From assembly GCA_946965045.2 (NCBI GenBank), contig OX337233.1, forward strand, positions 1,116,001-1,180,000: a DNA stretch of 64,000 bases. Direction: 5' to 3'. Origin of the DNA: Epithemia pelagica. Lineage: Eukaryota; Protista; Bacillariophyta. The notes under the pieces were generated by a model, which did not search any database, had not been told where the DNA came from, and saw only the letters and a program-made list of their open reading frames with translations. Below, one piece after another: positions 10,610-63,900 of the stretch (positions within the stretch are counted from its first letter, which is position 1; every line of letters begins with the position of its first letter). Both the position numbers and the translations under genes were made by a program.

Positions 10610-12353
10610 GTGTCTCTCGATTTAACCGGTGATAACCCCAAACATGCGAAATTGGAGGACGACAGTCGTCACAATCAAAGTGATGCATCCAACATCCAAC
10701 ACCAACCGAAGAAACGCCTCCATCATGGAGTTGTCTTGGCTCTTGCTTTATTTTTTTCGGGTCTTGGAGTCTTTCCCAACAAGTTGCAGAAAACAGTGAC
10801 TCCCCCAAGTTGGGGGAAGGCATAAGTTTTGCCATGGAGGGATCTCCGCTTACAGTTTGGTTGGGTTTGGCCCTCCGCTATCTGCGACCGGAATGGCCGC
10901 AGGACCACAGATCCTTCCGCTGTGTATTGACCATGATGGAAGGTCTTGTCTTTGACACAGAAAGTGGATGCCTCTCGATCGTCTACGAAGATGGAGGTGT
11001 GCTTTGGTGTAATTCTCTCTTTCAGGAAAGAACGGAATGTCAATGAATACTTCAAGACGAGTGGTTTCCATCCTGACTAAAGGTTCTGCATGAGGTGGAC
11101 CAAATGAATGGCCGACGTCGTTTTGGATTTACAACGAGGAAGAAACAGGGATGGATCTCACTTTGTTGGCTTCCTTCTGCAACCATCGTTGCGCTTCCAA
11201 AGCAAAAAGATTTCCCGTCACTGCCAAAAAGCGTTTCATCTGTATGCCGTAGAAGAATAGTTTCCCATGGATGAAAGAAGTACGACTGTGGGCCACTCAG
11301 CACGATTGTCATAAGATTACGACACATCTTCTCGCCGCTCGCGTGGTGAATCTCACCAATAGCTTCTCACCAGAAACATCTCCGACACCTCATGGCCAAA
11401 ACGCGGTCTGCACTACTGTTTGATTGAAGCATTTGCGGCGAGACTACGAAGACGCTGAGACACGGATTGCTTCCACAAGCAAAACGGAGTGCGCCAAACA
11501 GCTTGAGAACTTAGACAAGTGCCAGATCAAACCATCTCTGATGACAAACCAAGACCCGTACGATGTTACATGTCGGATTCGAGGATTTGAAGAAGGCATG
11601 CACACTGGTGTTGCAGTCATTGGACATGGTCACCGAGACAGGAGATAACAGGGCCATGTTGTTGTGAAAAGAATGCTTTGGCAACTCGAAGTGGTGACAA
11701 TCTAAAGGAAACTCAGCATCACACACTCTCATGAAAGCGGAGCAAGAGGCCAGAGGATTCTCACTGGGAGAGCATGCAAGAAGGCATTGGTCCTAGGAAA
11801 GGAAAAATCTCATCACGCAAGGTAACAGACATTCTTGAACGACCAAGCTTAAGTGAGCCAGTTTATCCACAGTGAGACACAGATATTGGCTTACAAAGAA
11901 TCATGTTTTTTCAGCAAAGCAAACCGGGTACAAAGAAACAGAAGCGCGTTGGTCCAAAAAGAACAAAATCATAAATCATCACTTCTGTGGCGGGAACATG
12001 GCAGGTGTCTTGTGTCTTCCATCTTGTTTCTCCATCTCTGCACATGTGGTACGAGCACATCAAAAGCCTCTCCCAGAAAATACAAAGTCCAAATCGCTCT
12101 CCGTTGCTTTTTTTGTTTTGTGTGCCCTCGAACTCCCAAGACTGTGCACAAGATCCCCAAGTCAGTCAGATGCGCCAAGACCATAGCTGTTTCGATGTTC
12201 GCGCTCGGGAGTCGTGAGGTTGCTGTTGGGCTTGGACGGAGAGGGCAAAAAGTTCGTTGGGTCGTCGTGCGTACTGGATCACGATTCGCACACGACCATG
12301 TGGGCAATAATCATGAACGTGTTGTGATATTTTCCGGCACGCGTGCATGGTAA
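10610..12353 (+). pseudogene. Possible decayed coding remnant of unknown family
   Basis: Chain of short protein-like ORF fragments (10610-10825, 10810-11046, 11424-11648, 11853-12353) broken by stops and frameshifts; no recognisable motif. Confidence 0.2.
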
Positions 12354-12391
12354 TCGAAACGTCTTGGGAAACTCCTCACATTTTAAGTTCG

Positions 12392-12588
12392 TTACTACAA
12401 TCCTCATCTTCACCCAACAACGCCTAACTAACATTCCTACCTGGTTAGTCCTCGCCTTGTTCCCAAGGCCGGGCGCGTCGGTCGACTCTAACCGCGCCGG
12501 GCGACCCTCCTCTAAAGGACTGAAACACCGTGAAGTAGTCTTACTACAATCCTCATCTTCACCCAACAACGCCTAACTAACATTCCTA
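12392..12588. repeat. 149-bp tandem unit (one full copy plus a second copy interrupted by the DNA transposon; remainder at 22326-22368)
   Basis: TTACTACAATCCTCATCTTCACCCAACAACGCCTAACTAACATTCCTA occurs at 12392 and 12541. The sequence following it in copy 1 (CCTGG...GCCTTGTTCCCAAGGCCGGGCGCGTCGGTCGACTCTA) reappears just after the transposon at 22328. Confidence 0.9.
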
Positions 12589-12622
12589 CAAGCTGAGTTC
12601 AGGGAGTATGTTCCTGACGTAG
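12589..12622 (+). repeat. Left TIR CAAGCTGAGTTCAGGGAGTATGTTCCTGACGTAG
   Basis: Reverse complement of 22292-22325 except 3 positions. Confidence 0.92.
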
Positions 12623-12895
12623 ACCCCTCGTAGATTTAGTACCATAGAGTATAATCCTTAATAGCGTTCGGCCTTACTAGTGAATGAAAGTGTCCGACTC
12701 GAGACTTCCCAGAGTCTTAGGATATATTTTTATGTGTTTTAGTGTGTTGCGTGACAGCTTCCGAACGCTGGAATTCCGTCCAAAATGATGAAAAAACGGT
12801 TGTTGTCTAACGACCATGGTGGAGGGCCTCCCAGACCCGTTGAACTGTTGCCGAGCTGCATCCGGATGCTTTAGGGTTTACTTGAACCACCCCCA

Positions 12896-15800
12896 ATGGG
12901 GCAACAGTTCAACGCATCGACATCATCCACAATGACACGATCATCGGACTCACCTCACGCAGCACAGTCTCGGATGGAACGAAGTTTTTCTGGGAACGAG
13001 ATTGTTGAACTGTTTCGGAAGCAGTGCTCACCCACCGTGTTTGGATTCTGCAACAAGTGGTTCCGAGATGTCGAGCTTGTAGGATATATGAACACTTGGT
13101 TGCCAGGATTGTCTGTGCTGGAAATGAACCGTGCTTTCCGAAGAGAAAAAAGCATTGCAATGTGTTTCGATGATGTTGAAAAGCCAAACAAGTATGGCTT
13201 CTACCGCTACAGAGATACAATCAAAAGGGAACGCTTCACATTCTATTACATCTCTAAAGACACAACAACCCTGCCAGTGATGTTGGACGATCATCAAGAA
13301 TGGCTGGAGGCTGCAGCCGAGAATGTGATTCGGCGGTCGGGACGAGCGAAGCCAACGAAGCGAAGGAACGAAGAGTCACCAGGGTTGCGTGAAGGCACGC
13401 TAAATACATCCAAGCAAGCAAGAAACACTTCAAATCCACCAGCAATCAAGAGCACTGCAACGCAGCAACATGGTCAACCGCCACAAATTGGAGACAGCCC
13501 TACCGAAATGCAAACGTCACCACCTCACGACAACACAAATCAGGTGCTTGTTGGAGCAATCCAACATCCTGAATTGGCCACAGACGAGATCAGCCATGAC
13601 CATCCACAGAGTTTGCCGATTGGTTTTTCAGTTTTCGAGAGTGAGATGATCCAAGGTCTATCGCAACAAATGGAAAGCGCCTATTTTGATGAGCCAAGGA
13701 ACCGTAGGCTCTTTGCCGGCAAATGCGATTCTCCAGGATCGTCAAAACGAAATCTTGAGCGATGGATAGAAACCCTTGAAAGGGCCATTTCCAACGTGGA
13801 GGCACTTCCGAATGTGGTTAACAAGGGAGACATCTTCCCCCTCAACCAGGAACAGCAACAGAGGGTACTGCTCAAGGCAACGTATTTACAACTTTCTCAT
13901 AAGATAGCGTTGCTTGATATGCCACACGGTCGTACATGGCTGAACTGCATAAGCGAAGCCATTAGCAAAATGGAACAGATTTATGGTGAAAAAGTAAGAA
14001 AACATCCCAAGGCCATTGCTCGTTTTCACAGGTACTTTCGGGAAAACGACAGTGTCCCTCATCCCAACTACCACGTTCGTATTGGGAAAGAGCCATCGCC
14101 CGTCTTATTCGTTCACATACCTGAAGCAAAGGTAAAGTTTGAATGCTGGGCAAAGGAAAACCTGAGCACTCTTACAACAGAGTCTGCTCTAATGTACCTG
14201 AGGACAACATTGCTTCCGGATATGCATACCATGATCGTACAAGAGTGCATGGATACGAATGCAACGCCAGTATCGTACGAGGACTTCTTGGCATCAATGA
14301 AGCTTTCCACCATTTCGCATAGCACAGCGTGGCGATGTATTGCTGCTGCAGGGTTCGTGTTCAAGGAACACACGAAAACATACTTCACTGATCGACACGA
14401 AAATGCTGAGAATGTTGCCCACAGAGCTGCTTTTGTCAAGAAGTACTTTAAGTGGGAAGAGCTGTCGTATCGGTGGGTGCAGCTCCCTACCGAGGATGCA
14501 ATCAAACTTGAAAACGAAGGGAATGCGGGCAAGGAGAAGCTCTTGCCAAACAGCTTTGTATTTGAGTACACTGATGTAACAACAGGCAAGCAGATGCGGG
14601 AGTACCATGTTGATGCCTTCCCAAGCGAATTTGAACGGTACATCAAACCAGAAAACACAATTCACAATGGAAACTTGTCACACAGGTTTCCCTCCGACCG
14701 CAAACCTGTCATCCTCATCGGCCAGGACAAATCGATCTACAAGCAGTTTTCCTTCTCGTCCAAGGCATGGTACACTAAAGATGGCGCAACTAAAATGCTG
14801 CCAAAGGATGATGGACATGGGATGATGATCAGCGCTTTTGTAAGCCGATCATGGGGCTTCCTTATGAACAGAAACCCGTTGCTTGCTGCGAGTCTATTTC
14901 GGATTAATGAACTCCGTCTACATGCGACACACAACAAATACGTCTCTACCGAGGCTGCAGTGAACCTCAATGGTCACACTGCCAAGACTCCAATTACCAA
15001 TGCCCAACCGTTCACTCGCTTTTTTGAATACGGAGCAGATAAAGAGGGATATTGGAATTATGAATACATGGCCTTGCAGTTGGAGGATATTGTCGATTGC
15101 CTCGTGGTCATGTTCCCCGCCCATGACTTTGTCTTTTTATCCGACCAAAGCAGTGGTCATGGAAAACAACAATCCGATGGGTTAAATGCTCTGAACATGA
15201 AAAACGACTGGGGAGGAGCTGTTCCCAGCATGCGGGACACACAAATTATTGATCAAGCTTGCCTTGGCCCGTACAACCATGACGACAAACTACGAGTTGG
15301 TGACGTACAACACCTCGTCTATCAGGAGAACGATCGTGGTCCAGTTGCTAAAAAAGGCCATCGTCTCAATGACGCGCAGCGTGTCGCATCGAAGAATACA
15401 CACCAAACTGGTAGAAAGAAAAAGCGCAACCTCACAAAGAAGGAGCTCATGGCAAAACTTGTCCGGGTCATGGGACCTGGAATGCAACGTTCATTTCAAT
15501 CGAAAAATGCTAGTGAACTACAGGACCTTTGTAAACGCTCCAACATTGCAACGGTGATTGAAGATGATGTGATCGAGGAAGGCTGGATGAATGCTGCAAA
15601 AGGGCTCTTTCAAGTGTTATGGGAGCGGGGGTGGATAGACCCTAACAACATGATCAAGTACGTCAAGACAACCAGAGATGCATGGCTGGAAGCGGATAAG
15701 AAGACTGTGAAAGAAGCCTATCAGGCGGACTACAAAAAGTACTCTATGGTTCATCTGATGAGCGAATGCTCCGATTTCAAGAACGAAAAATCTGCAATGG

Positions 15801-16242
15801 AGAAGCTGGCGGAAGACTTGTCTGAACGACATCGTTGCAGGATCGAGATTCTCGTATCGACCAAGTATCACTGTGAAATGGCCGGTGAGGGGATCGAGTA
15901 TGGCTGGGGTTACTCAAAAAAAGTCTTTCGTGCTTTCTCACTGAATGAGAAGAAAGACAAAGCTGCCTTTTTACGATGTTTGACAGCGAGCCTGAAGAAA
16001 ACAACACCCGAAATCATGCGGAAAATGTCAGCAAAGGCACGTCGCTATATGCTCGCGTACTTGTTATACGATCAAAATTCCAACAACAGAGACTATGCAG
16101 CTGCGGGCCTCTCGTATGCCAAAATTGAATTGAAAAGATGTCAAAAGCAATCAAGTGTCACCGATCCGCCTTCGACCAAGATCATGGCTTCATCTCACGT
16201 CTCTGGAGAGAAACGCAAGGATCTGGTGCAGTAGAAACCTGA
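12896..16242 (+). pseudogene. DDE transposase (Tc1/mariner, Sagan-like), probably disabled
   Basis: Motifs ILIGQDKSIYKQF, PKDDGHGMMISAF, KEGYW, FLSDQSSGH, KGLFQVLWERG, DFKNEKSAME, KYHCEMAGEGIEYGWG and ARRYMLAY. A 5-bp duplication ATTGA-ATTGA at 16124-16133 shifts the C-terminus KCHRSAFDQDHGF (stop 16240-42) out of frame. QDES-like motif reads QDKS. Confidence 0.85.
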
Positions 16243-16653
16243 TCTAATCTCCATTTATCATCAAAATGCATGTAACTTAACTATTTATAACAGCAATCCA
16301 TTTTATTGAATGTATTTCTTGTCAGTTATTGGTATCAATGATCACTTCCGTGTTGCGTGCTCGTGTTGCGTGTTGGATTATCAGTTTGTTAGTACCTCGA
16401 AAATGTGAGAGAGCGAGAAAATGGACGATTTTCGGAGCAGACCTCGCGCGAAACACGCCCCCCTCTCCGAAAACGCGCACGCATCGCGAAACTGGCACGC
16501 AAATCCTTAAGTAACTTAGCCCACATACCAAAACTTCACCGTTTTTTAGTATGTGAGCTCAAGATTTTTTTTTGGAATGTGAGCTGAGGGCTGAGGAGAA
16601 TGCTGCGTTTCGTGTTTCTTGTGTTTTGTGTTTCGAGTTTTTGCGTTTCGACC

Positions 16654-19602
16654 ATGGGGAAACCAAGCCCTAAGAAACAGTATTCAAAAGCAGGCGCTCA
16701 AAAACGAGACAGCATGAGTGACAAAGGAAATCTTGACGCTCTTATACTTGCAATAGATGCAGCGGAAGAGCAGTCAGCCAAAGCAGCAGCGGCGCCCGAA
16801 GCAGCAGCAGCCGCAGCACCCGAAGCAGCAGCAACAGACGAAGCGACAACAACAAAGCACCATCGGTTTCTTTCGGATCAAGACTTTGCCGAAGTGAAGG
16901 ATAAAAAGCTTGCAGATGTTTGGCGTGGCCATCCAGAGAAGGACCACAGCAAACAGTATTCGGAAACTCAAATGCGGCAGCTCCTCACCGATACGCGCAC
17001 AGCGGACTACAAGAAAGGCGTCGAGGAAGTGGAGAAACTCCCTTCTCGTTCTGGACGGGATCCAATCAGGACTTTCACCGAAGGCCTCAAGACGCTCTCC
17101 AAGATCAAAGACAGTGCTGTACTTGCCTGTGCTATGGGAGAGTATGTCTCACGGAAGATTTTGGCCACTTTTTCGGTCCAAGAAGCTCCAATTCGGAAGC
17201 CCGGTTCAGGCTTGCAAAAGGGGAAGATTGTGCCACTTTCGGGTGGAATGGGTCTCCCTGTCAAGAAGAACAGAAAACATACCTTCCCGATCGGCAAGCA
17301 TGTTGGTTACACATTTGCGAACAATCCGGTAGTCAAGATCTACCTTGGAAAAGTGCTTCTGTTTGAGGTGAAGGAGTCAAAACTCCCAGGCGCCGGGTTT
17401 GGCGTTTTTGCAGTTCGGACAATCAAAGATGGTGAAGTGATTGGCGCGTACACGGGAAACGACGTCACGTCTCGGACAGTTGTACCCAACGAGTACGCAA
17501 TTCAGTTCGGACGTGACAATCGAAGGCTTCAAGCAGACAACGACGATCACTTCGGCATGGGGCTGCACTTAATCAACGACCACCTACACCATCGGTACGG
17601 TACAGACAATCCACCGGATGAATCGGATGATCAATACAACGTGAGAATCATGCCGAATCTTCTAGTCAAGGCAATCAAGCCGATCGAAAAGGGCGACGAG
17701 CTGTCTTTGTTTTATAACCTTTCGGACGAATCGCCGACGTCCTCCGAACAGGTTATCCGACCGTCGACGAAAGGTGACGACGACGAAGACGAGGGAAAGA
17801 AACGCGGTCGACCCAGTGATGAAAATGAAGACAACGGGAAAAAAACAAAGAAGGCTTTCGCTACCTCTTCTACTACTATTTTCCACCCAGTTGCTGCTGT
17901 TGCTCGTCCTCCTGCTCTTCCTTCTCCGCCTCCTCCGTAAGACCTTTCTGGGCACTACAATTCGCCCCCTCAGCTGCCACCACATCATCCTCCGCCGTAT
18001 CATCCTCATCCTCCGCCGTATTATGATCCACCGCATCATCCTCATCCTCCGCCATATTATGATCCACCGCATCGTCATCATCCTCCTTCGTATCATCCTC
18101 CGCCGCATCATCATCATCATCCTCCTTCGTATCATCCTCCGCCGTATCATCATCATCCTCCTTCGTATCATCCTCCGCCGCATCATCCTCCGCCGCCGCA
18201 TCATCCTCAGCCGCATTACCATGGGCATCCCCCGTCCTATAATCAACCCCATTATGGAGGAGGTTACCAGGGGGCTCTGCCTTTATCGCAGCAACAACAA
18301 CGCACGACCCAGCCGGTCGTAGGTTCACCGGAGCGTCCGAGCAATCCCGTCCCACCTGCAGCACAAGCTCAACCCGCCACTCGACCCGATTGCTCCCTTT
18401 CTGGAATGTTAGTACAAGTAATTGCCTTGCCAGAATTTTCAGAAAGTGACACCACGGATGACAATTCTTTTGATCAGGAGATGTCGGATGACAATTCTTT
18501 TGCTCCGGAGATGAATGTGATCGACGAGTTAATGCAGGAGGGTGAATGGCAAAAGCAACAGATGTTGCAAAATAGAGAATTGCGCAAGAAGTATTTCAAA
18601 TCGCTATACGATAGTGAAAACAAAATCTATCGAGGCTGTTTTTTTACAACGCCGGCAGACCTCCTCCAGTTGTTGGAGCAAGTGTGGAAAGGCAAACACC
18701 TGAACAGTAAAGGAAAGGGCACCTTTTTCAAATCTGTTCAAGACTACACCCCAAATTTGTTGATGGCGATGATGGAAGATGAGGGCATGATGGCCAACAC
18801 TCGGTACTTCAACGGCTGCGACCCAGAACATGTCCAAAAAGTCACGACAGATTTCAAGCAGTTTCTTGCCTCAGCTCTCCATGGAATGAACTACGCAAAA
18901 GATGAATCATTTGCGGACCAAATGAGCATTTACCTTTCGCTTATGAAGACCACTCGGGAAGAAGTGCAAGAACCTCACATCGACTTCTTGTTCCCAGCCG
19001 TAACAGGAAACATGTCCGAGAGTCCAAAAACGCCATCCGGGAAGCAACAAAAAAGCAAAAGGATGACTCGGCGATCGTTCTCAGATCTGCCACTCCGGGA
19101 ACGCATCCCCTTCATTGTTTTTATGCCCCTGACGGAGGAGGGTATGTCCATTGAATTGTGGAGCTACCGTGCTGAGAAGCACGAGAACTATACGCATGAG
19201 TTGGGTAACGTGGTACAAATCCCGTACGGCAAGTTTCTCCTCGTTCGAGGAGATACTGTCCATGCTGGTGGCTTTGAGACTGGAGAGCTGGGAAATCCAC
19301 GTGCACATTTTTATGTGTACCAAGGAAAAATGGGACCATCCACGATCCCATGCCAAAGAACAGCTACAATCTACCTTCTGGACAAAGGCTTTCAGAGTGC
19401 TACTTCCATCAAAAGGACATTCCTGGTGATCGCCCAAGTGGGATCATTCGGGTTAACCTTACGCTCGATGGCCATCGCGTTGCCGTCCAGGGTGATTATC
19501 GTAGAGTGCTTCTGGCTACGAAAAAACCTGGTATTTAGATCGCGAACAAAGAAGCCGATCAAACTTAGATCTTTCCTTGTGGTGAAAGTGTGTTATTGTT
19601 GA
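16654..19602 (+). pseudogene. Transposon cargo: SET domain - His/Pro/Tyr repeat - 2OG-Fe(II) dioxygenase (PhyH-like) fusion interrupted by one TAA (17938-17940)
   Basis: ORFs 16600-17940 and 18406-19602 share a frame, and 17941-18405 has no stop in it. SET motifs: GAGFGVFA, AYTG, HLINDH, KPIEKGDELSLFY. Dioxygenase motifs: PHID (HxD), VHAGG, PRAHFY. Possible 1-bp loss in the A-run at 19326-30. Confidence 0.8.
17980..18225 (+). repeat. Coding low-complexity repeat (HPPPYY/HPPSY units, CATCCT-rich)
   Basis: In-frame translation HHPPPYHPHPPPYYDPPHHPHPPPYYDPP...; the overlapping Arg/Ile/Met-rich and Asp-rich ORFs are off-frame shadows. Confidence 0.9.
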
Positions 19603-20046
19603 AAAAGAATACCATGGTACGTTGAGTTGCAGTATGACATTAAGATTTACTAGTTTATTCCTTCATATTATACTTTAGTACATTGTCGTGTTGTGTCGAA
19701 AACGCAAAATATGAGATAAGAATCATAGCTCGTCTGGGACCAATCACAAACTCCCTCTTACATCCATACGAGGCGTGCCCGCAAACCGGGACCCAACTAC
19801 CGACACTGGCAAGCTGGATAACGACGATGACCATGATGATGAAGAGGACAAACAGGATGAGCGATGATAGCTACAACAAGGACGACTACAATACAACGAC
19901 AACAATGATAGCCACGACAATGACGAGGACTTGGACGACGACAATGATGATAATCACAACAAGAATGACTGTAGAAGCACTACCATGATGACAAATCGAT
20001 TCATATTTAGTGATTAAGGATACCTAAAACGTCCATCAGTAGATAT

Positions 20047-20953
20047 CTAGTACGCCTCGTCCTCATGATCCAAGTACTCGGGACCAAAAAGCCCGTTTTG
20101 CTGCGTACCGATGAAGTCTTCTTGGGTCTCGAGAAATCCATCATCGGCATACGAATCAATAGATGTCCGGTATGCACGGGAAGGATTGCTAAAGAACAAA
20201 GGAGGAGACGACGGGATGTTTTCTCCCAATGCCAGCGACTCATTCAAAGTCTGGCGAGGGTCTGTCGCTCCACTTTTCTTCACCTGTTCCTCAGCAATCC
20301 GACGCTGGAAAGCATGCTTCTGGGAGGGGGTCAGTGCAAAAGCTCGAGACGCCACCTTCAGGGAAGAAGTTACTTTCTTCGGGGTCACATAAGACTCTGG
20401 AGTCTTGTTCTCGACGTCGTCCTCCTTCTTGATCTCCTTCTCGGGCTTGCTGTCGGGCTTGTTGTCGGGCTTGCTGTTGGGTTTGGTGTCTGTGGCAGCA
20501 GAGGGCGCGTCGTGAGAAAGGGAGACTCAAAACCAACAATGAACAATCAAACTTATCTTCTTTGCCGACAGCCTCGATCGCAAGGAGCTCTGCCGCGATA
20601 TCCGACAGGTTAGCGCATTCGACGTCCTTGTTGCTGACGAAGAACACTGGGATACCATCTTCATCCCCAATGGTGAGTTGCCACTGTTTTGCGCGCTCGT
20701 GCCACGACGAAGGACCCTCAAGGTTGAAGGTCACATGCTTCTTTGTCGAAGCGGGAGACTTCGTCGTCGTCGTCTTCTTCTTCTTCGACGTTTTGTTGTC
20801 CACGGCCGTCTTTGTCTTCATTTTCTTGTTTGCCTTGTTTCCCTTGTTTCCCTTGTCGGAGGGAAATGCGGTTGTGGAGGGAGCTGCGGCGGAGTCCTCC
20901 TGCTCCTTCTTCGCAGACTCAGCTCGTTTGGTAGCACTACGCGTCTGGCGCAT
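20047..20953 (-). CDS. Transposon cargo: Lys-rich hypothetical protein, two exons (20953-20557, 20489-20047), splice donor apparently mutated
   Basis: A 67-nt intron 20556-20490 (ATAAGT...CCACAG) joins the 250-aa and 113-aa ORFs in frame (GKE-D-TKPNSKPD), giving 279 aa. The donor reads AT rather than GT. Confidence 0.55.
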
Positions 20954-21124
20954 CGTTGGAAAGTGAGAACACAATAGGGATTCGTTCGTTTGATTGTTGT
21001 GTTTGTTTGTTTGATTGTTGCCCGCTCTCCGTTCTTGTGTCATCTAGGGAATCCCCCCGCGCTCATTCGTGAACAATATCGGCGCGCGCCACAAAATCAA
21101 CTTGCAGCATGAAGCAACTTCCGA

Positions 21125-21697
21125 ATGACCCGCCATGCAATGGAACAATCAAACAGAGACGACAGGAAGAGGCAAGGAAGAAGAAACAAGATGACCAACA
21201 TGAGGACGAAGTTCGAGTTCAACGAAGAGGATGGCCGTGAGGGTGGTGCTGGTCTCCCGTTCAAGTCGTGCTTTTATGCCAGCGATGTTTGCGCGCTCAT
21301 CGGGCCCATGTCGAGAAACAAGGACACTGGCCACAACATCGTCGACCGTGGCCATCTGCTTGTGCAGCGGGAGGTTGCGACCGACTACCTACGGATTGCA
21401 GTCTTTGACCGGGATGCAACAAGCGAGCATGAGGAACCAGCGTTGGTTGTTCCAGTTGGGTTCATTGCTCTGTCGCACCTGGACCAGGTCTCTGGGAAGA
21501 CGAGCAAGAACGGACCTCCCATGGGACGCATCCGCCTCTACACACGCTGCTCCATCAACCCTCAAGCCTGCATGGAACCCCAGGTCGTTACAATCTACAT
21601 GGGCAGCAAGGATATGGATCGCTTCAGCATTTCGCTTGGTGCGATGATGCTCAAGCACCCGCTTCAAAATCTCTTCTTTAATCATCAACAAGCCTAG
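21125..21697 (+). CDS. Transposon cargo: hypothetical protein, possible PH-like (RanBD/EVH1) fold
   Basis: 190-aa ORF divergent from the previous gene; segment IVDRGHLLVQREVATDYLRIAVFDRD resembles PH-like beta strands (weak). Confidence 0.5.
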   Translation: MTRHAMEQSNRDDRKRQGRRNKMTNMRTKFEFNEEDGREGGAGLPFKSCFYASDVCALIGPMSRNKDTGHNIVDRGHLLVQREVATDYLRIAVFDRDATSEHEEPALVVPVGFIALSHLDQVSGKTSKNGPPMGRIRLYTRCSINPQACMEPQVVTIYMGSKDMDRFSISLGAMMLKHPLQNLFFNHQQA

Positions 21698-22291
21698 ATA
21701 GTGAACAATGTAGCAGCGTTTTATGATTATCATTTGAGTAGGATCTTCATTCTCTATGAATACGATCTAATTCTATAGTTGTGTTACCTTTACCGTACAA
21801 TACATTGCGTTCAGGTACGGCTGTGTGAGTCACAACAACGAAAAGAACATCAATCTTTGTTGTGAACGACGCAACTTCTAGTCTAAGTTCCATATATCTA
21901 ACGAGAAGAATATCAATTTTTGACGTGAACAACGCTACAAGTGTTCATAGTCTTTGTTCTATCTTCTATCATTCGATTCTACAATAGAGGTGCATTGGTT
22001 GCACCAAGTTTTGCCGTGAGTCGCCGTAGTAAATCGCGCGGCGACCACCTTCAACTAGATAAAACCACACCTACAAAACGAATGCAGCGCCGACATCGTT
22101 CTCCATGCTCAACCCATGAATGGAGAAGAGGTTCAGAGCATGGGATCATGGAGCCGTCTCCTATTTGGCAAGAGATCGGTCAAAAGGACCGTTCACCATG
22201 GTCAATTTTTGGTAGAACGGTAGAGGCATAAATAGAAGGGCTATATTAAGGGGATGGCTCGCGCGAATTACGTAGATTTCCTACTGGAGCG

Positions 22292-22325
22292 CTACGTCAG
22301 GAACATTCTGTCTGAACTCAGCTTG
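22292..22325 (-). repeat. Right TIR (minus strand CAAGCTGAGTTCAGACAGAATGTTCCTGACGTAG)
   Basis: Inverted match to 12589-12622. Confidence 0.92.
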
Positions 22326-22629
22326 TACCTGGCCTTGTTCCCAAGGCCGGGCGCGTCGGTCGACTCTACTCTGCGTGGTGAGTACGACAGCGTTAAAATA
22401 GACTAGGACTTTTTTTTTTTCCGATCCGGCTTGCATTCGGAAGAACATCCAAACAAAGCAGGCCAAAAGACCTTTTCAGTTTTCAGCAGAGAGGGGACGA
22501 TCATGTTCCCAAGAAACCAAACAGAGACAAACAAGCAACATACAAGATGCTCTCACAAAAATCAAATCCTTACAAAGAACAACAACTCAACTACAAACCA
22601 AATCATCATCTGCTTCAAAATCTTTCATC

Positions 22630-23559
22630 ATGGGTAACTGTCTTCCATCCACTGCTTCCGCCTCTTTCACTGCTGCCAAACCCAAAGTTTTGGTTCTGGG
22701 TGCGAGTGGCTATGTGGGCAAGGCCACATTGACCAACTTGGTATCGCGTCATGGTGACAAGGTACAATTGTTTGCGGGAGTTCGCGATCCTTCCAAGTTT
22801 GAGTCCATGTCCGGTGTCCAAGTGATCAAGGCCGATATGGGTGCGGACCAGACCAGTCTGGTTTCGACTTTACGTGACTTTGATTGTTTGTTTTTGGTCA
22901 CACCGGGACACGAAAATCGTACCAAACTGACAATCAATGGCATTCATGCCGCCAAGGCTGCTGGAGTCAAGTACACGTTGGTGGTTTCGGTGTTGACAGC
23001 CGATACCAACTCTGTTTTTGGGAACCAAATGGCTCCGATTGAAGATGCTATGAAAACAAGTGGATTGAAAAGCTATGGCATTCTTCGTCTTCCCTTGTTT
23101 ATGGATAATTTTTATGCGGGTGCCCAGTCCATTAAGGAAAGTGGTACCTTATACGATCCACGCAATTCCAACCAAGTGTTTACACCCATTGCCGTCAACG
23201 ATGTTGGCAAGGCATCGGCTGACATATTGGCCAATCCTACCAACCATCATAACAAAACATACAAGCTGGTCATGCCTGGTTTTACACTGCAAGATTTGGC
23301 CAAGGCCTTTTCTACTACATTGAAGAAGGACGTGACAGTGACGACCGTTCCGTATTCGGCAGCCAAGGAAGCCTTTATGGGAATGGGTTTTCCAGAATGG
23401 CAGGTGGATGGTATCTTGGAGTTGTTTCAAATGATTGATAATGGTAGTGCTGTGACCAATGAGACGAAAGATACAAGTGACTTTAGCAAGATTACGGGTG
23501 GTGAACAGCCCATGACCATGTCACAATGGGTACAAGCCAATGCGGCTGGATTTCAATAA
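22630..23559 (+). CDS. NmrA-like NAD(P)-binding atypical SDR, copy 1
   Basis: Rossmann motif VLVLGASGYVGKA, plus FLVTP, LRLPLFMDN and IAVNDVGKA; N-terminus MGNCLPS. Confidence 0.9.
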   Translation: MGNCLPSTASASFTAAKPKVLVLGASGYVGKATLTNLVSRHGDKVQLFAGVRDPSKFESMSGVQVIKADMGADQTSLVSTLRDFDCLFLVTPGHENRTKLTINGIHAAKAAGVKYTLVVSVLTADTNSVFGNQMAPIEDAMKTSGLKSYGILRLPLFMDNFYAGAQSIKESGTLYDPRNSNQVFTPIAVNDVGKASADILANPTNHHNKTYKLVMPGFTLQDLAKAFSTTLKKDVTVTTVPYSAAKEAFMGMGFPEWQVDGILELFQMIDNGSAVTNETKDTSDFSKITGGEQPMTMSQWVQANAAGFQ

Positions 23560-24642
23560 ACCAATGGAAAAAGGGCGAGGAGGAGAATGTCACATGGTCC
23601 ATGTCACAGTCAAAAGGAATCAAGGAGAGTACAACGAAAGTGTAGATTAGTAAAAAGTGGATATAGACGAGCTGAAAGGCCTGGTTTCATTGATTTCAAA
23701 GATAGCGAGCTCTGGTGGTACGGCACGAGATTGGAACAACCTTCGAACACCGAACCTTTGCATAGTAGGAAGCGAAGTCCTTGGTTTGTGGTGTTGCATT
23801 ATTGTCAATGGGAAAAGAATCCTTCCACATATCAAAAGTCCCGTCCGTACAAAGCCTGCGTGACTTGAGCCGTCCATGATCTCTTCCCTGAACTACTCTA
23901 TACATGGCGATTGTCCGCTATGTCGTATCTATAGAGGGAGGTTGATCTTTGACCTGCCCGCTTTGTCTTTGAGACCGTCTACCTAGATTGATTTCGCTTT
24001 TCCTTTACCTCTCTCCATCTCTATTTTCTCCTACTAGAGTATTTACTGTTGCTAGGAGGAGTAGCTCGCATGCTATGCTCCTTAGCTAGAGACCAAAGGA
24101 AATTGTGTGGAGTACTCGTAGTATACCTCTATTCATAGCTATGTTCTTCTCGCACTCGCGCAACGGACATTCCGACATTCGATCGTGTCTATTTTTCATG
24201 ACAACGATAGTTGGTTGGGCACGCATACCCACAACGGAAAATGGAAGAATCCAAATCCATCCCTTCACAGATTTCAAACAGGGTATCGTTTAGGGAAGAT
24301 ACAGTCCGAGTCATTCCATTCTTCATCTCCCTGTGATTACGAGTATAACAGTGTTGTTTCGTGTTGTTTGGGGGAAACAATTGCCACCAACAATTGATAA
24401 AAAGTCATCCTTTGGTCGAGACACAAAACGGCAACGATTGTCACTATCTTCGTCTTGTTGTTGTTGTTGGCAATCGATTGCTTGCGATTGTCTCTGGTCT
24501 GGTATTCAAAGTTTATCAGCGAGATTGCATCAAGCTCAAGTCCTTATTGTGACGCTCTCCTCTCCCGTTATTCGTGCGTACAAAAACATCAACAAGCATT
24601 CTCCACCGTACCACGCTTCTGGAACGAACAAAGAAGAAGATC

Positions 24643-27564: not shown

Positions 27565-28812
27565 CTTCTTTTACTTATATACACTTTCGATGAGCTATCC
27601 TTGATTTCTTTTTACTGTTATGGAGCATGTGGCATTCTCCTCCTTGGCTTTTTTCCGGTGGCTTATTAAAATCCAGCCGCATTGGCTTGTACCCATTGTG
27701 ACATGGTCATGGGCTGTTCACCACCCGTAATCTTGCTAAAGTCACTTGTATCTTTCGTCTCATTGGTCACAGCACTACCATTATCAATCATTTGAAACAA
27801 CTCCAATATACCATCCACCTGCCATTCCGGAAAACCCATTCCCATAAAGGCTTCCTTGGCTGCCGAATAAGGAACTGTCGTCACTGTCACGTCCTTCTTC
27901 AATGAAGTAGTAAACGCCTTTGCCAAATCTTGCAGTGTAAAACCAGGCATGACCAGCTTGTATGTTTTGTTATCATGTTTGGTAGGATTGGCCAATATGT
28001 CAGCCGATGCCTTGCCAACATCATTGACGGCAATGGGTGTAAACACTTGATTGGAATTGCGTGGATCGTAAAACGTACCACTTTCCTTGATGGACTGGGC
28101 ACCCGCATGAAAATTGTCCATAAACAAGGGAAGACGAAGAATGCCATAGCTTTTCAATCCACTTGTTTTCATAGCATCTTCAATCGGAGCCATTTGGTTC
28201 CCAAAAATAGAGTTGGTATCGGCTGTCAACACCGAAACCACCAACGTGTACTTGACCCCAGCAGCCTTGGCAGCATGAATGCCATTGATTGTTAGTTTGG
28301 TACGATTTTCGTGTCCCGGTGTGACCAAGTACACACAATCAAAGTCACGTAGAGTCGACACGAGACTGGTCTGGTCCGCACCCATATCGGCCTTGATCAC
28401 TTGGACACCGGACATGGATTCAAACTTGGAAGGATCGCGAACTCCCGCAGACACTTGTACCTTGTCACCATGACGCGATACCAAGTTGGTCAATGTGGCC
28501 TTGCCCACATAGCCACTCGCACCCAGAACCAAAACTTTGGGTTTGGCAGCAGTGAAAGAGGCGGAAGCAGTGGATGGAAGACAGTTACCCATGATGAAAG
28601 ATTTTGAAGCAGATGATGATTTGGTTTGTAGTTGAGTTGTTGTTGTTCTTTGTAAGGATTTGATTTTTGTGAGAGCATCTTGTATGTTGCTTGTTTGTCT
28701 CTGTTTGGTTTCTTGGGAACATGATCGTCCCCTCTCTGCTGAAAACTGAAAAGGTCTTTTGGCTTGCTTCGTTTGGATGTTCTTCCGAATTCCGAATGCA
28801 AGCCGGATCGGA
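27565..28812 (-). repeat. Inverted segmental duplicate of about 22418-23660
   Basis: Near-identical 5' flank (TTTCCGATCCGGCTTGCATTCGGAA...) and CDS; about 100 bp of more diverged 3' flank. Confidence 0.85.
27666..28592 (-). CDS. NmrA-like NAD(P)-binding atypical SDR, copy 2 (inverted duplicate)
   Basis: Differs from copy 1 at about a dozen residues; the last Gln codon CAA is TAA, so it is one residue shorter. Confidence 0.9.
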   Translation of the reverse strand: MGNCLPSTASASFTAAKPKVLVLGASGYVGKATLTNLVSRHGDKVQVSAGVRDPSKFESMSGVQVIKADMGADQTSLVSTLRDFDCVYLVTPGHENRTKLTINGIHAAKAAGVKYTLVVSVLTADTNSIFGNQMAPIEDAMKTSGLKSYGILRLPLFMDNFHAGAQSIKESGTFYDPRNSNQVFTPIAVNDVGKASADILANPTKHDNKTYKLVMPGFTLQDLAKAFTTSLKKDVTVTTVPYSAAKEAFMGMGFPEWQVDGILELFQMIDNGSAVTNETKDTSDFSKITGGEQPMTMSQWVQANAAGF

Positions 28813-33399: not shown

Positions 33400-33512
33400 C
33401 AAATTACGCGTGTGATACCAAGTGAAAAACTAAAATAGTGAGCATTAAGCTACGCGTCCCTCATGGGTTAGCTACTCGCCCAAAATTCGCTTAATATCAG
33501 TCGCCTTTCTTG
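33400..33512 (-). repeat. 3' LTR of copia A
   Basis: Preceded on the minus strand by purine tract GAGGGGAC (33513-33520). Confidence 0.92.
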
Positions 33513-33692: not shown

Positions 33693-36600
33693 TTAGAACA
33701 GAATCATTTGTGCCAACCTTGTTCGTTCCGGACCAGTCTGAATCTTAGTAAGCAAGTCCGCTAGATTCGTCTTGGAAGGCTCAAACGCAATCTTGCATGT
33801 CCCATTGGCAACGTTCTCACGTACAAAGTGATACACAACTGAATTGGACTTCTTGCGCAATGTTGATTCTGGTAAGGAACTGTTGTAGACGACCGACATG
33901 TTGTCTACTCTCACGTGTGCATGTCCATCCAGAGGAATGCCCATCATTCTCAATTTGTACCGTAATCCTTTCAGCATCTCCACGCCAACCTTGAGAGCCA
34001 TAAATTCAGAACCAAAAGTCGAAGTTTCGACACTGGTTTGCTTCTTGCTGTACCATGAGATCGGTGCTCTATTCAAATAGATAAGCACTCCTGTTCTGGA
34101 CCGTCGTGTCAAGAGATCACCTGCATGGTCAGAGTCGACAAAGACCGTCATCTGGACAGCCTTGCCTAAAGGTTCGGGTGCATCTGGAGGTACTTCTTCC
34201 GTGGCTCCAGGATAGAAGCCTGACCAGTCGCTTGTCGGTTCATCACCAAGTTCAATATACGACGGGTCCATGATCAACCGTGAACGCTCATGTAGCTTGA
34301 GGTATGCAAAGAGGTGCAGCATTGCCTCCACATGACCTTCTCTGGGGCCAGCTAAAAATCCAGCCAACATTGAAACCTCTGCGGCGATGTCAATGCGTCC
34401 CAATTCAACTAGCCAACGGAGTACGCCCATCTGCTGCTGGTAGAACGACATTAATTCAGGATCACAATATGGGGTTGTGTCCAACTCAGGACGATATCCA
34501 CTGGGCAAGACACTTGGAGCTCGTGTTTTCAGTTTACGATCTCGGTCTTCCAGCCATGATACAACATTCGTTATGGCAGCTTTTGCATATTTCTCTGAAC
34601 TCAACGCCCAACATCGCTGTGAAGCGTCGTTATTGATATCAAATGTTTGTACCTGGGATCCCAAATAATACTTCGGAACGCCAATCGAATCCGGTTTCAG
34701 TAAGTAATGGTGATCCAGCATCGTGAGCGACTCCTTTGGTTTGTGAGAGATGATCAATATATCGTCGGTATAGACGAATAGCATTTCATAATAACGCTCT
34801 CCATTGCCTTTCGTCGCTTTCCTCAAATAGCAGTCAGGATCAGCACGGCATGGGAAATAGCCCAAGTCTTCTTGTAGGGTTGTGGACAGGAGATCACGCC
34901 ACGCGTAGGCGCTAGTCTTTAGGCCGTAGAGTGCCTTGGTTATAATCGCAATCCGACCTTGGTACTCGGTGCCGAATTCTAAACCACATCTTGTGCAGAC
35001 CTTTTCAAGGCATGGAGCATTAAGGTATGCACCAGCAATATCAGCCGCCTGAATCTCCAATCCATTTAGAGCCGCTAACATAAATCCAATACGCACACTT
35101 TCACGACTGACTACGCTTGCATATGTGGGCGCCTCAGGCTCTTCAGTTTTGTGTCCCCCGGCCACATATCTGGCCTTGCGGGTGAAATCCATCTTGACAT
35201 CAAAGACGATGTGACAAGGGATTACCTGATACCCCACTGGTTCATTTACGCCGTCGTCCAAGATGTTGACAGCAGGAAAAATCTTCGACATCTCCAGTTT
35301 CAAAGCTTTTCGCCAATAGTCCGTGCCAGTTTCACGATCAATTTGGAGTGCTCGTTCTACTGTTTTGGGGACCTCAATGCCGTATTTTTGGGATTGACGC
35401 ATATATCTTGTCATCTTGGCGGCTTTGATCAACCTCGTTCTCCTTCGGAGGGTGAATGGTACCCACCATGCGAATGCAGGTTGTTTCTCGATCTTGTTCG
35501 CAACCGCATACTCTGCGACTTCAATTGGATACGACTCCTTAAGATCTTTCAAGGCTTCCCAACTTGAAGAGCCATCTTTCCATTGCACGCATAAGGACCA
35601 TCCTCTAGTGGTCTTCTTCTTATGCTTGCGACCATTCAATTCGAATTCTCCCTCTGAGAGAGGGACAGCCGTTTTATCAGACTTGTGATCAGTAATCTCT
35701 TCAACCATTCGATATAGATTGCCCTCATCATCGAGCTGTTCGTAAATATTTTCAGCTATAATGTTGGCAGCATAGGATTGCACATGGCCATCATCGAATT
35801 CGACTTCGTAAAGTGTTGTGTCCAAGTATGGATTGGACGATGCGTGTCCGAGGACTCGACCTTCTGCGTCTCGTTTCCGTCTCCGAACAGTCCCCTTTCG
35901 TTGATCATCACCTAGGGGCAACATGACTTTTGCAGAGATGAGTTTATCGTATGCATCTGGTGCATAATCATCTGCTTCCGGCATGCGAACGTCCGGCTGC
36001 TCGTCGTCTTCATAAGCTTCGAACGTGGGTGTATCCGCATCATCTTCAAGAATACCCGCCATTCTGTCACCAAGGGCCGCTTGTAAATTTTCCATATATG
36101 TGGTTTGTTGTGCTTTGTGAGCATCATCCATTTGTAGATCTCTGTTGATTGGCCAGACAGAAGTGCGATGCACGATCTTGCCCTTTTCGGTCAGGACTTT
36201 TGCGCACATTGCCTGGCCCACAGTATGACTTGGACCCAACCAGCGTCCGAGTTTACGTCCCTCAAAGCCAGGGTTACTATACCACACAAAATCGAACCAT
36301 CGGTGCTCCACCAAATGGGAAATGTCTGGAGTATCTCCAGTGAGTTGCTGAATGGGCGGACCGTTGACATTACTTCCAAAGCTCGTATGGGAGCGTCGCT
36401 CCGCCATCAGCATGAGACAGTGGTCCCAGAGTACTGCTGGCGCGTTGCTGCGTCTCATTTCTCTGCGGTAGAGGCGCTTTAATTCTCTAATATTGGCCTC
36501 AGCCAGGTTTTGGTTGGGCGTCCATGCTTCCACTGGTTTTATCCGGCACCCGTACTTGTGGGCTAACTTCCGAAATTCTTGCGAGGTTAGCTCTGGTGCA

Positions 36601-39518: not shown

Positions 39519-39631
39519 CAAATTACGCGTGTGATACCAAGTGAAAAACTAAAATAGTGAGCATTAAGCTACGCGTCCCTCATGGGTTAGCTACTCGCCC
39601 AAAATTCGCTTAATATCAGTCGCCTTTCTTG
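39519..39631 (-). repeat. 5' LTR of copia A
   Basis: Identical by eye to 33400-33512; reads CAAGAAAGG...CGTAATTTG on the minus strand. Confidence 0.92.
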
Positions 39632-60929: not shown

Positions 60930-63900
60930 CATAGAGTCAGCACGGTAGCAAGTGAAATAACTGTTATGACGGCAACGTGCGAATTGGATAGTCACGCGGA
61001 CACTTGCTGCCTTGGAGATGTCTGTCAGGTCCTATATACGACAGGCAAAGCAGAAGTCAGTGGTTTTACGAATTCACTTGGAAGCATCAAAGAAACTCCA
61101 ATCATCACTGGAGTAGTCGCCTATGATGACCCCAAATCAAACGAAACATACCTCTTATATTTTCATCAGGCCCTCCATTTACCGATGATGAATAAATGTT
61201 TGTTAAACCCCAACCAGATGAGAGAAGCAGGAGTCAAAGTGAATGACGTCCCTCTAAAATATATCAAGAGTGAGGACAGGAACAGTCACTCGCATTCGAT
61301 CATAGCTCCTTTCTCAGATGAAAGTGACCATCTTGTCATCCCATTCGACCATTGGGATGAAATCAAGAATATAGATCCGAGTAACAGGATCCATATGACT
61401 AACGACACACCGGAGTGGGATCCCAATGACTTGGCAGACGCCGACGAAAGGAAACTCCGTGTCGATTTAGAAACAGATGCAGTTCAAAAGAAAGAATCAA
61501 GAGACTTGCATCAAAGGATGACCCGAATGGTTCGGGTAAACACAAGGACGATTGCTGATTTGAGGCATCGTCGAAAGGGGACTGTGGACCCTGTAACTCT
61601 ATCAAGAAGATGGGGAATAGGTATCCCATTGGCTGAGAAGACTTGTTCGGCCACAACGCAAGTGGGAGTACGAGACTTTACTGACTCTATTGGAAGCAAG
61701 AGATTACGCCATACAGCGTATCAGTTAAAGCACAGACGGTTAAGAGCGGACGTCTACACAGATACCCTCTTCTCAGACGTCAAGTCACTTGGTCAGAATA
61801 CATGCGGACAAGTGTACGCGACAGATTTTGGATGGGTAGAGTTCTATCCCATGCAACGAAAGAAGGATGCACATAAGACACTTGAAAGAGTATTCAGTGA
61901 CTATGGCATCTTTAATAGTGTCATACCTGACAATGCACCTGAGTCAACAAGCGGTAACTTCAGGAAGACGGCGCACAAGTTCAGCTGCCGGATCAAACCA
62001 ATCGAGGCATACACTCCTAACCAGAATCTGGCTGAAGCCAATATTCGGGAACTAAAAAGGATGTATCGCCGTGAAATGAGAAGGACTAATTGTCCCTCAG
62101 TCCTCTGGGATCACTGCCTTGAACTAATGGCAGCACGGAGATCTCACACAGTCTTGTCGACTAGTCCATTCAATACCGGTCCACCCCTAACTACATTGAC
62201 AGGGGACACACCTGATATTTCTCACCTAGTGGAACATCGGTGGTACGACCCGGTTTGGTACTCCAATCCTGGGTTTGAAGGTCGAAAGTTGGGACGATGG
62301 CTCGGACCTAGCCAAAGCGTCGGTCAAGCCATGAGCTCAAAAGTCCTAACTGACAAAGGGAAAATTATATACAGGACGTCGGTTTGGCCCCTGTCTTCGG
62401 AGAAATCACACGATGAAACCTTCACAGCACAGCGTGAACAATTTGACGCTAATTTAAAAGCCGTATTGGGTGCAAGATTTGAAGGAATGCCGATAGAACA
62501 AGGAGAACCCGATGAAGATGGCACGGATACTCCGTTTTACGACGCATATGAGGATGATGAACAGGAAGATGTTCGGAAGCCTGACCTAGACCAATACAAG
62601 ACAGATTCCTATGACAAGCTCATTGCAGCGAAAGTCATGCTACCTTTGGGAGGATCATTGCGTCAGGGGCAAGTCAAGCGAAGGAAAAGAAATGCAGACG
62701 GCAACCTCATTGGTCGACCTTCAACGAACCCTATCCTAGACACGACCATGTACGAGGTCGAATTTCAAGATGGTCACGTGGAGTCTTACGCGGCAAACCT
62801 TATCGCGGAAAACATCTACGAACAACTTGACGAAGAGGGCAATAAGTATCGGCTCCTGAGCAGTATCGTTGATCACAAGAAAGATGCATCGGCTATCTCT
62901 ATCTCAGATGGTACCTTCCATTGGAACGGGAGAGAGCATAAGAAAAGAACTACCAGAGGTTGGTCATTGTGTGTCGAATGGAAAGACGGGTCAACATCTT
63001 GGGAGAAGTTGCAAGATCTCAAGGAATCCAATCCCTTGGAAGTCGCGGAATATGCTGTAGCCAATCTTATAGACAAGGAGCCAGCATTTGCATGGTGGGT
63101 CGCTTTTGCTCTGAAGCGACGGGATCGGCTGATCAAGGCGGCCAAGTCGACTCGATATTTCCGCAAATCACAAAAATACGGTATCGAACTGCCCAAAACG
63201 GTAGAAAGGGCGTTGGAGATTGACCGAGAGACCGGTACTGATTTCTGGGCTAAGGCATTGCAACTAGAAATGTCAAAGATATTCCCAGCAGTAAAGATAC
63301 TGGATGAGGGAATGCCGCAGCCCGTTGGTCACAAAGTAATTCCCTGCCATATCGTCTTTGACGTAAAGATGGACTTTACGCGAAAGGCGAGATATGTTGC
63401 AGGTGGCCACAAGACAGGAGAGCCTGAAACACCGACCTATGCGAGCGTTGTTTCCAGGGAAAGTGTGAGAATTGGGTTCATGTTGGCGGCATTGAATGGA
63501 GTGGACGTGACGGCCGCAGATATAGCCGGGGCTTACCTCAATGCCCCATGTCACGAAAGGATTTGTACACTCTGCGGTCTCGAATTCGGAAAGGAATACG
63601 AAGGACGTTACGCAGTAATAACAAAGGCACTCTATGGCCTCAAAACCAGTGCATTCGCCTGGAGAGAGCACCTGTCCACAACTCTACAAGAATCGTTGGG
63701 ATTCAAGCCCTGCAAGGCTGACCCTGACGTGTATTTGCGACCAGCAAAGAAACAAGATGGTTCTTTATATTATGAACTCGTGTTCATTTATATTGACGAC
63801 GTACTCGTAATCTCGCACAGGGGACGTGAAATCCTCAACATGCTTGACCAGCATTATCTATTGAAACCGGACTCAATAGGTCCACCCAAGATTTACCTTG

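Follow-up and report, generated by a model that had tools for sequence, protein, structure and literature searches.

Within a window of 64,000 nucleotides from the diatom Epithemia pelagica (NCBI GenBank assembly GCA_946965045.2, contig OX337233.1, positions 1,116,001 to 1,180,000 of the forward strand), a DNA transposon occupies positions 12589-22325. On the plus strand it carries a gene for a 1112-aa transposase and, downstream of it, a gene in which a SET domain and an Fe(II)/2-oxoglutarate (2OG) oxygenase-fold domain share one reading frame; two smaller open reading frames (ORFs) lie to the right. An earlier reading made from the letters alone, hereafter the sequence-only reading, had described a SET domain and an HxD...H...R oxygenase in one frame inside terminal inverted repeats (TIRs), joined by a His/Pro/Tyr linker and interrupted by a single TAA codon, and all of these features are present in the sequence. 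All coordinates given below are positions in the window, and L001, L002, L003, L005, L006, L007 and L010 designate other loci, including sister copies of the element, that were compared with the window copy.

Element boundaries and the SET-oxygenase gene

A repeat search of the whole window, together with a direct reading of the ends, delimited an element of 9737 bp (12589-22325) with a TA on each side. Its inverted repeats (12587-12633 and 22281-22327) comprise 47 nt including the flanking TA, are 83% complementary, and were the sole inverted-repeat pair found to bracket the fusion gene in that search. The left TA target-site duplication (12587-88) is followed by the left TIR (12589-12633, 45 nt, plus strand), which begins CAAGCTGAGTTCAGG, and the right TIR (22281-22325, 45 nt, minus strand) is followed by the right TA (22326-27), so that the ends read TA-CAAGCTGAGTTCAGG...CCTGAACTCAGCTTG-TA. 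Furthermore, a duplicate of the empty target site, consisting of left flank, TA and right flank, is preserved at 12392-12490, 50 nt upstream of the filled site. Herein, 12392-12449 matches 12541-12598, 12450-12490 matches 22328-22368, and the junction ...cattccTAcctgg... has no element inside. Because this duplicate joins both flanks without the element, the ends can be fixed to the base, at TA-CAAGCTG. In addition, the same TIR and TA were found at both ends of L001, L005 and L006 and at the right end of L007, which are independent insertions in the same assembly with unrelated flanks.

The N-terminal half of the fusion gene spans 16600-17937 on the plus strand, within an ORF of 16600-17940 that contains a Pfam SET match, and the conserved start of the gene is probably M19, at 16654. 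The SET and oxygenase ORFs both lie in frame 1, separated by the TAA codon at 17938-17940. This codon is followed in the same frame by a His/Pro/Tyr-rich repeat, which forms part of a low-complexity linker rich in His, Pro, Tyr and Gln (17941-18405, plus strand, with 18-nt repeats at 17948-18244). The oxygenase-fold domain then occupies 18406-19538 on the same strand, with HxD at 18976-84, the second His at 19261-63 and the Arg at 19300-02.

The sequence-only reading had asked whether 17938-40 is a sense codon in related copies, allowing that all intact copies might keep the stop. By testing sister copies and public data, it was found that the TAA is a private nonsense codon that arose from an ancestral CAA (Gln) by a C-to-T change. 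In L002, which is 99% identical, position 17938 is a C, the codon is CAA, and the SET part reads via the linker into the oxygenase, broken only by a 14-nt deletion of its own. The 78%-identical paralogue L001 also has Gln at this position, and every contig from three public DNA runs (contigs up to 509 kb) reads C at 17938. A search with the L002 ORF recovered P0221, an uninterrupted SET-linker-oxygenase protein of 967 aa, and the same assembly contains at least 11 uninterrupted fusion ORFs of 948-986 aa (P0221, P0224, P0225, P0228, P0229, P0231, P0232, P0234, P0235, P0251 and P0252). Among these full-length ORFs, identity to P0221 is 96-100% for nine and 79-80% for two; all are open, and the Gln (Q444) at the stop position is invariant in 11 of the 11 aligned. 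Three of them were seen in their DNA context, each in an element of the same structure (L005, L006 and L007). Clusters at 90% identity held 43 transposase sequences and 14 and 19 fusion sequences. Since Gln stands at the stop position in L002, L001, the sister ORFs and the public DNA runs, the SET and oxygenase parts are, on this sequence comparison, one gene, and the fusion is the ancestral and current state of the family.

It was also considered that internal initiation or processing might yield the SET domain and the oxygenase as two distinct proteins, their shared frame being incidental. The window copy and L003 each have a stop between the two domains, the oxygenase stands alone in other diatoms, and the predicted protein P0003 begins at a Met just past the stop. 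A look through public runs of RNA-Seq type listed none for this diatom. However, the two stops lie at different codons (Gln in the window copy, Arg in L003), and neither occurs in the 11 aligned full-length sister ORFs, which run unbroken through the linker and keep its frame despite changes in repeat length. Two separate proteins are accordingly regarded as very improbable, and a single polypeptide is preferred. Readthrough of the stop codon was rejected for the same two reasons, the differing positions of the stops and their absence from the sister ORFs, and an intron removing the TAA is unnecessary, as the sister copies read straight through with Gln.

The window copy had been taken as near-intact, but it carries three lesions, two of which, including the nonsense codon, fall in the fusion gene. 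The second is a 1-nt deletion at about position 19329, common to the window and L002, where the window reads AAAAA and the public-run contigs read AAAAGA. The window ORF is out of frame after this deletion, and the true C-terminus, GTIHDPMPKN...KPGI, lies in the frame of 19332-19538 with its stop at 19536-38. The gene therefore ends at 19538, and not at 19602 as the sequence-only reading, which had missed the deletion, had placed it. The third lesion, private to this copy, is a tandem duplication of 5 nt (16123-16127), by which the last 35 transposase codons are shifted out of frame. The window copy is thus decaying, and its fusion gene is dead, a pseudogene. In L005, both long ORFs are open and the consensus motifs are present.

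Folds and families of the encoded proteins

The SET half was identified by Pfam SET (PF00856), which matched residues 266-373 (17395-17718) over its full length (model positions 1-105 of 105) with an E-value of 1.6e-6 and 28.9 bits, against a cut-off of 22.4. The characteristic motifs appear as GAGFG (17389-17403), AYTG (17446-17457), LINDH (17569-17583) and ELSLFY (17698-17715), and three element lineages, with identities as low as 32%, all retain the GxG-type, GxYxG and EL..(F/C)YN motifs without change. The closest solved sequences are the PR/SET domains of MECOM, PRDM16 and PRDM12. The domain is short and is accompanied by neither pre-SET nor post-SET cysteine modules. It was also likened to small SET proteins of haptophytes and giant viruses (Nucleocytoviricota), a resemblance that is a lead from language-model feature similarity alone. 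By its sequence, this half is predicted to be a small PR/vSET-like SET methyltransferase domain.

The oxygenase half, read in ORF 18406-19602, contains the motifs PHIDF (18973-87), TVHAGG (19255-72) and NPRAH (19294-308). In 60 relatives, the most distant of them at about 22% identity, H114 and D116 never vary, while conservation of H208 and R221 is at least 90%. A profile built from five relatives retrieved 476 clusters from a library of 1.8 billion proteins, 46 of them at E ≤ 1e-30, and the QxPHxD motif of this family is invariant. The sister protein P0002 was modelled with AlphaFold2 on 60 relatives, which gave a predicted local distance difference test score (pLDDT) of 82 and a predicted template modelling score of 0.78. 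Searched with Foldseek, this model gave 296 PDB matches at E ≤ 0.001, and the best 50 are all Fe(II)/2OG enzymes (top E about 6e-6), led by FtmOx1, AsqJ, KanJ, P4H and PHD2; VIA-align gave a Z-score of 12.2 with a root-mean-square deviation (rmsd) of 3.4 Å over 187 residues. AlphaFold DB and ESM Atlas agree with the 2OG fold, the best AlphaFold DB clusters being a marine protist protein and a Thalassiosira oceanica 'Fe2OG dioxygenase domain' entry, both at E about 3e-13. The AlphaFold DB neighbours of the family also include oomycete proteins with C2H2 zinc fingers. Pfam at an E-value of 10 on 60 family members gave no JmjC, Tet_JBP or 2OG-FeII_Oxy_2 match and nothing else except one Med26/TFIIS N-terminal domain, and a sequence search of the PDB was empty. 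Because no curated family matches in sequence, the predicted oxygenase activity rests on the fold and on the conserved HxD...H...R, and the fold assignment itself, made on the model, is considered sound. Stand-alone homologues occur in Epithemia, where P0005 lies among ordinary genes, and in Thalassiosira oceanica, as the AlphaFold DB entry. No further SET fusions were found among the fetched oxygenase-family proteins by phmmer with the window SET protein.

These matches bear on whether the fusion could be a writer and eraser of methyl marks, as the sequence-only reading had suggested. The SET domain would then write lysine methylation, and the 2OG domain would demethylate methyl-lysine, 5-methylcytosine (5mC) or N6-methyladenine, reversing host silencing marks. 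The 2OG oxygenases do include demethylases, every fusion has the SET domain first and the oxygenase second, both domains are constrained, and AlkB turns up in the fold search, at Foldseek rank 35. Genes for TET/JBP and for SET proteins have also been documented on transposons (PMC12730594; bioRxiv 10.1101/2025.02.11.637652). The best folds over the searches, however, are the PhyH-type enzymes OkaE, FtmOx1, AsqJ, KanJ and SnoN, which are small-molecule oxygenases, together with prolyl hydroxylases. Neither JmjC nor TET/JBP occurs among the matches listed (the best 50 PDB matches from Foldseek and VIA-align, and those from AlphaFold DB and ESM Atlas), and the Pfam result is likewise against a demethylase. 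Fold prediction thus upheld the Fe(II)/2OG part of the earlier proposal and did not place a demethylase clade nearest; on the model, the domain is PhyH/prolyl-hydroxylase-like, not JmjC or TET/JBP, and not preferentially AlkB. A writer and eraser pair is for these reasons judged unlikely.

The transposase gene (12896-16234, plus strand) encodes 1112 aa with a predicted Tc1/mariner fold. In the window copy, its motifs are GQD611 (14720-31), D750 in LSDQSSGH (15137-60) and E1001 in GEGIEYGW (15884-907). A total of 67 homologues of about 1000 aa were collected from diatom genomes and marine metagenomes, including Thalassiosira exigua and Fragilaria crotonensis; in the Fragilaria homologue, neither SET nor oxygenase adjoins the transposase. 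D611, D750 and E1001 are invariant in 40 homologues, within the motifs GQD611E, FLFD750HSSGH and HCExAGEGIE1001YxW. We take E1001 to be the catalytic Glu from the likeness of GIEYGW to PIENLW, and not from a residue-level superposition. The second Asp and this Glu are about 250 residues apart, a distance outside the DD34-41E/D of named families; the long-spacer IS630-Tc1-mariner family Sailor, DD82E, reportedly has a spacing of 82.

An AlphaFold2 model of the transposase, built on 40 of its homologues (pLDDT 79), was compared with solved transposases. With VIA-align, whole Mos1 gave a Z-score of 14.4, Mos1 6-345 (of 336-342) being matched to 321-1079 of the model. The catalytic domain of Sleeping Beauty gave a Z-score of 12.9 with an rmsd of 3.8 Å over 200 of 226 residues, and the next unrelated match a Z-score of 7.7. 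Foldseek gave only weak matches to the complete 1112-aa model (E about 0.08), the six best of which are all Mos1. At the sequence level, no Pfam match was obtained at an E-value of 10, including DDE_3, Transposase_1 and HTH_Tnp_Tc3, and no PDB match was obtained by phmmer or by a 40-sequence profile. Because the transposase lacks a sequence-level match, its placement in the superfamily rests on the fold, the motifs and the TA duplication. Mos1 (PDB 3hos) and Sleeping Beauty (5cr4) share with the Epithemia element the TA duplication, short TIRs, a paired N-terminal helix-turn-helix, an RNase-H-fold catalytic domain and the motifs D-E, D...H and (N/G)-I-E-x-x-W. They differ in that the Epithemia transposase is about three times longer and has its second D and its E about 250 residues apart, compared with 34-41. 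The Tc1/mariner label chosen in the sequence-only reading therefore fits for fold, motifs and TA duplication, with no named family matched, and the protein is best described, on its model, as a giant and highly divergent Tc1/mariner relative of about 1100 aa.

Selection, history and proposed role

Selection was assessed from the ratio of nonsynonymous to synonymous substitution rates (dN/dS) between two intact subfamilies, L005 versus L006 and L007, which differ by 20% in protein. It was found to be 0.42-0.56 for the SET domain and 0.36-0.42 for the oxygenase, compared with 0.81-0.84 for the linker and 0.95 for the tail. Against L003, where dS is saturated, SET gave 0.25 and the oxygenase 0.28. 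The purifying selection that the sequence-only reading had sought across copies is thus seen over ranges of 0.25-0.56 (SET) and 0.28-0.42 (oxygenase); by these estimates, both domains are under purifying selection, and the linker and tail are not.

L003 is of particular value, as it holds the gene in a different kind of element. Its SET-stop-oxygenase gene, 41-45% identical to the window fusion, has the same order and frame, with the stop at an Arg position. Subrepeats of 193 nt make up the kilobase TIRs of the element itself (L003:739-12906), which has a 4-bp CTAT duplication and shows no trace of the giant transposase or of the small ORFs. On its minus strand are broken ORFs; in one, a short stretch matches DDE_Tnp_1_7 (piggyBac-type; 73 residues, E 1.3e-8), and the element is, by this match, apparently piggyBac-like. 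Another subfamily (L010:8001-14395, with 25 cluster members), whose transposase has 37% amino acid identity, has a gene of 408 aa with SET only, together with a counterpart of the 190-aa ORF described below, but no oxygenase domain. Because L010 carries SET without the oxygenase, it suggests that SET was cargo before the fusion arose. The simplest history is that SET was an early cargo, that a host oxygenase was then fused to it, and that the fused gene moved between transposon types.

Exchange among copies is indicated as well. Between the window and L001, dS is 0.13-0.25 for the cargo and about 0.9 for the transposase, and fusion residues 19-230 are nearly identical between the L005 and L006/L007 subfamilies, where dS is 0.33 elsewhere. 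Because cargo dS is far below transposase dS and near-identical stretches are shared between diverged subfamilies, this pattern looks like recombination or gene conversion among element copies.

The same data allow the fusion to be weighed as a passenger, that is, a captured host gene that has no role for the element and is kept only through the youth of its copies. Most full-length copies are 96-100% identical and hence recent, the copies in the window, L001, L002 and L003 are each broken differently, and the transposase of L005 against that of the window has a dN/dS of 0.85, as young copies drift neutrally. On the other hand, ORFs that are 20% apart in amino acids have stayed open along about 980 codons, and dN/dS in the domains is well below that in the linker and tail of the same gene. 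Furthermore, the fusion has been kept in L003, a second and unrelated TIR element, at the identity and low domain dN/dS given above, and SET cargo has been kept in L010 beside a strongly diverged transposase. The sequence-only reading had allowed for a one-off capture of a host gene, and dozens of copies were found instead, in two kinds of TIR element. A passenger is regarded as quite unlikely.

Chromatin modifiers are seldom encoded by transposons, and tests of them are few (VANC in Arabidopsis is one tested case, and the role of fungal TET/JBP is inferred), and transposon silencing in diatoms is little understood. Several known systems can be compared with the Epithemia element. In red algae, the neighbouring accessory genes PAG2 (an N6-adenine methylase with SET) and PAG3 (ParB-like with a 2OG oxygenase whose best HHpred match is PHYHD1) move among Plavaka, Zisupton and Mutator elements, and Helitrons have captured both kinds of gene (bioRxiv 10.1101/2025.02.11.637652). 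Compared by description only, the likeness is that algal DNA transposons carry a SET protein in company with a PhyH-like 2OG oxygenase and that the pair crosses superfamilies. PAG2 and PAG3 are nevertheless encoded separately, each with other partner domains, on EnSpm/Plavaka-type elements, whereas the Epithemia element encodes one polypeptide, without a DNA methylase or ParB, and is a TA-inserting element with a Tc1/mariner-fold transposase. In Phytophthora, HarbingerS and MuDR carry a SET histone methyltransferase gene (Kojima and Jurka 2014, cited in PMC12730594), again SET cargo on a stramenopile TIR DNA transposon; their transposase superfamilies are different, and no oxygenase domain is reported in what that citation conveys of them. 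Fungal DNA transposons, KDZ/Plavaka and others, encode TET/JBP dioxygenases (PMC12730594), which are likewise 2OG-Fe(II) dioxygenase cargo on heterogeneous transposon lineages but belong to a distinct 2OG clade acting on 5mC, and the Epithemia domain matches no TET/JBP model. Finally, SETMAR/Metnase arose when a host SET gene captured a mariner transposase domain by exonisation (PMC2847698); SET is thereby associated with a mariner transposase in both cases, but the Epithemia element is mobile, and its SET gene is separate and lies beside its own transposase.

The sequence-only reading, made without a search, had no precedent for such cargo on an autonomous Tc1/mariner element. In the literature searched, no report was found of a SET-2OG fusion, of such cargo on a Tc1/mariner-type element, or of the giant transposase family; SET and 2OG cargo as such is known on other superfamilies, by which the claim of novelty is tempered. 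Transposon-borne enzymes of chromatin type are thus already known, and what would be new here is their pairing in a single polypeptide on a Tc1/mariner-fold element.

Altogether, the window locus is a decaying copy of a multi-copy, TA-inserting TIR family, whose fusion protein would probably act in the nucleus and modify proteins to the benefit of the element. The family encodes an accessory protein of about 967 aa composed of a basic N-terminal region, the SET domain, the Pro/His/Tyr/Gln-rich linker and the Fe(II)/2OG oxygenase. A nuclear location is suggested by the basic KKRGRP...KKTKK and N-terminal KPSPKK stretches, and the substrates would be proteins, most likely histones or other chromatin proteins. 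The SET domain would transfer a methyl group from S-adenosylmethionine to lysine, and the oxygenase would hydroxylate, or oxidatively strip a group from, the same or a neighbouring substrate. The element could gain through chromatin state, expression or the choice of target.

Several observations count against this proposal. In all three element lineages, ND stands for the canonical NH of SET, and PR-type domains are often weak or inactive enzymes. In addition, sequence searches link the oxygenase to no curated 2OG family and the transposase to no Tc1/mariner model or solved structure, and a dN/dS of 0.3-0.6 is only moderate.

A more far-reaching version, held only tentatively and rather doubtful at present, is that the fusion is a self-contained chromatin-editing cassette, with which diatom DNA transposons would rewrite marks on their own chromatin or at their targets and which would be traded as a unit between unrelated superfamilies, as a recurrent counter-silencing strategy of algal transposons. 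If true, this trade would span giant Tc1/mariner-type and apparently piggyBac-like elements, and it would parallel the unfused SET and PhyH-like pair on red-algal Plavaka.

Whatever its exact role, a compact pairing of a predicted methyltransferase and a predicted oxygenase, under selection in many copies and in two unrelated kinds of TIR element, is present in diatoms, and intact natural copies such as L005 offer a directly testable protein. Furthermore, the oxygenase family, with about 476 sequence clusters, is absent from curated libraries, and with this transposase the Tc1/mariner fold would reach a length of about 1100 residues, its catalytic domain holding an insertion of unusual length.

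Accessory frames and neighbouring sequence

Two further ORFs lie between the fusion gene and the right end of the element. The first, of 250 aa (20291-21043, minus strand), is further cargo; it is 98% identical in L002, L005 and L006 and 36-47% identical in L001, where it contains two stops, and it is less conserved than the second. The latter, of 190 aa (21125-21697, plus strand), is a conserved accessory gene with 62% amino acid identity to L001; from a dN/dS of 0.26 at a dS of 0.98 in this comparison, it is clearly coding, and its homologue in the SET-only subfamily L010 has 42% identity. Neither ORF has a Pfam match, and the 190-aa ORF also gave no lead in ESM Atlas.

The locus and its flanks (window 12000-22953) are duplicated in L002 at 99%. 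L002 was considered as the other haplotype and rejected, as it lies on the same contig, 105 kb away and inverted; it may have arisen by a genuine inverted duplication of the segment, or the two haplotypes may have been duplicated in the assembly. In L002, a copia-type retrotransposon is present between the right end of the element and an NmrA-like gene, with copia RVT_2 genes nearby. In the window, the NmrA-like gene stands directly to the right of the element and is duplicated by an inverted repeat of 1.0-1.2 kb at 96-99% (22435-23602 and 27620-28790). Other repeats in the window, at 33400-33512 and 39519-39631 and at 34809-35434 and 63127-63752, are probably parts of long terminal repeat retrotransposons.

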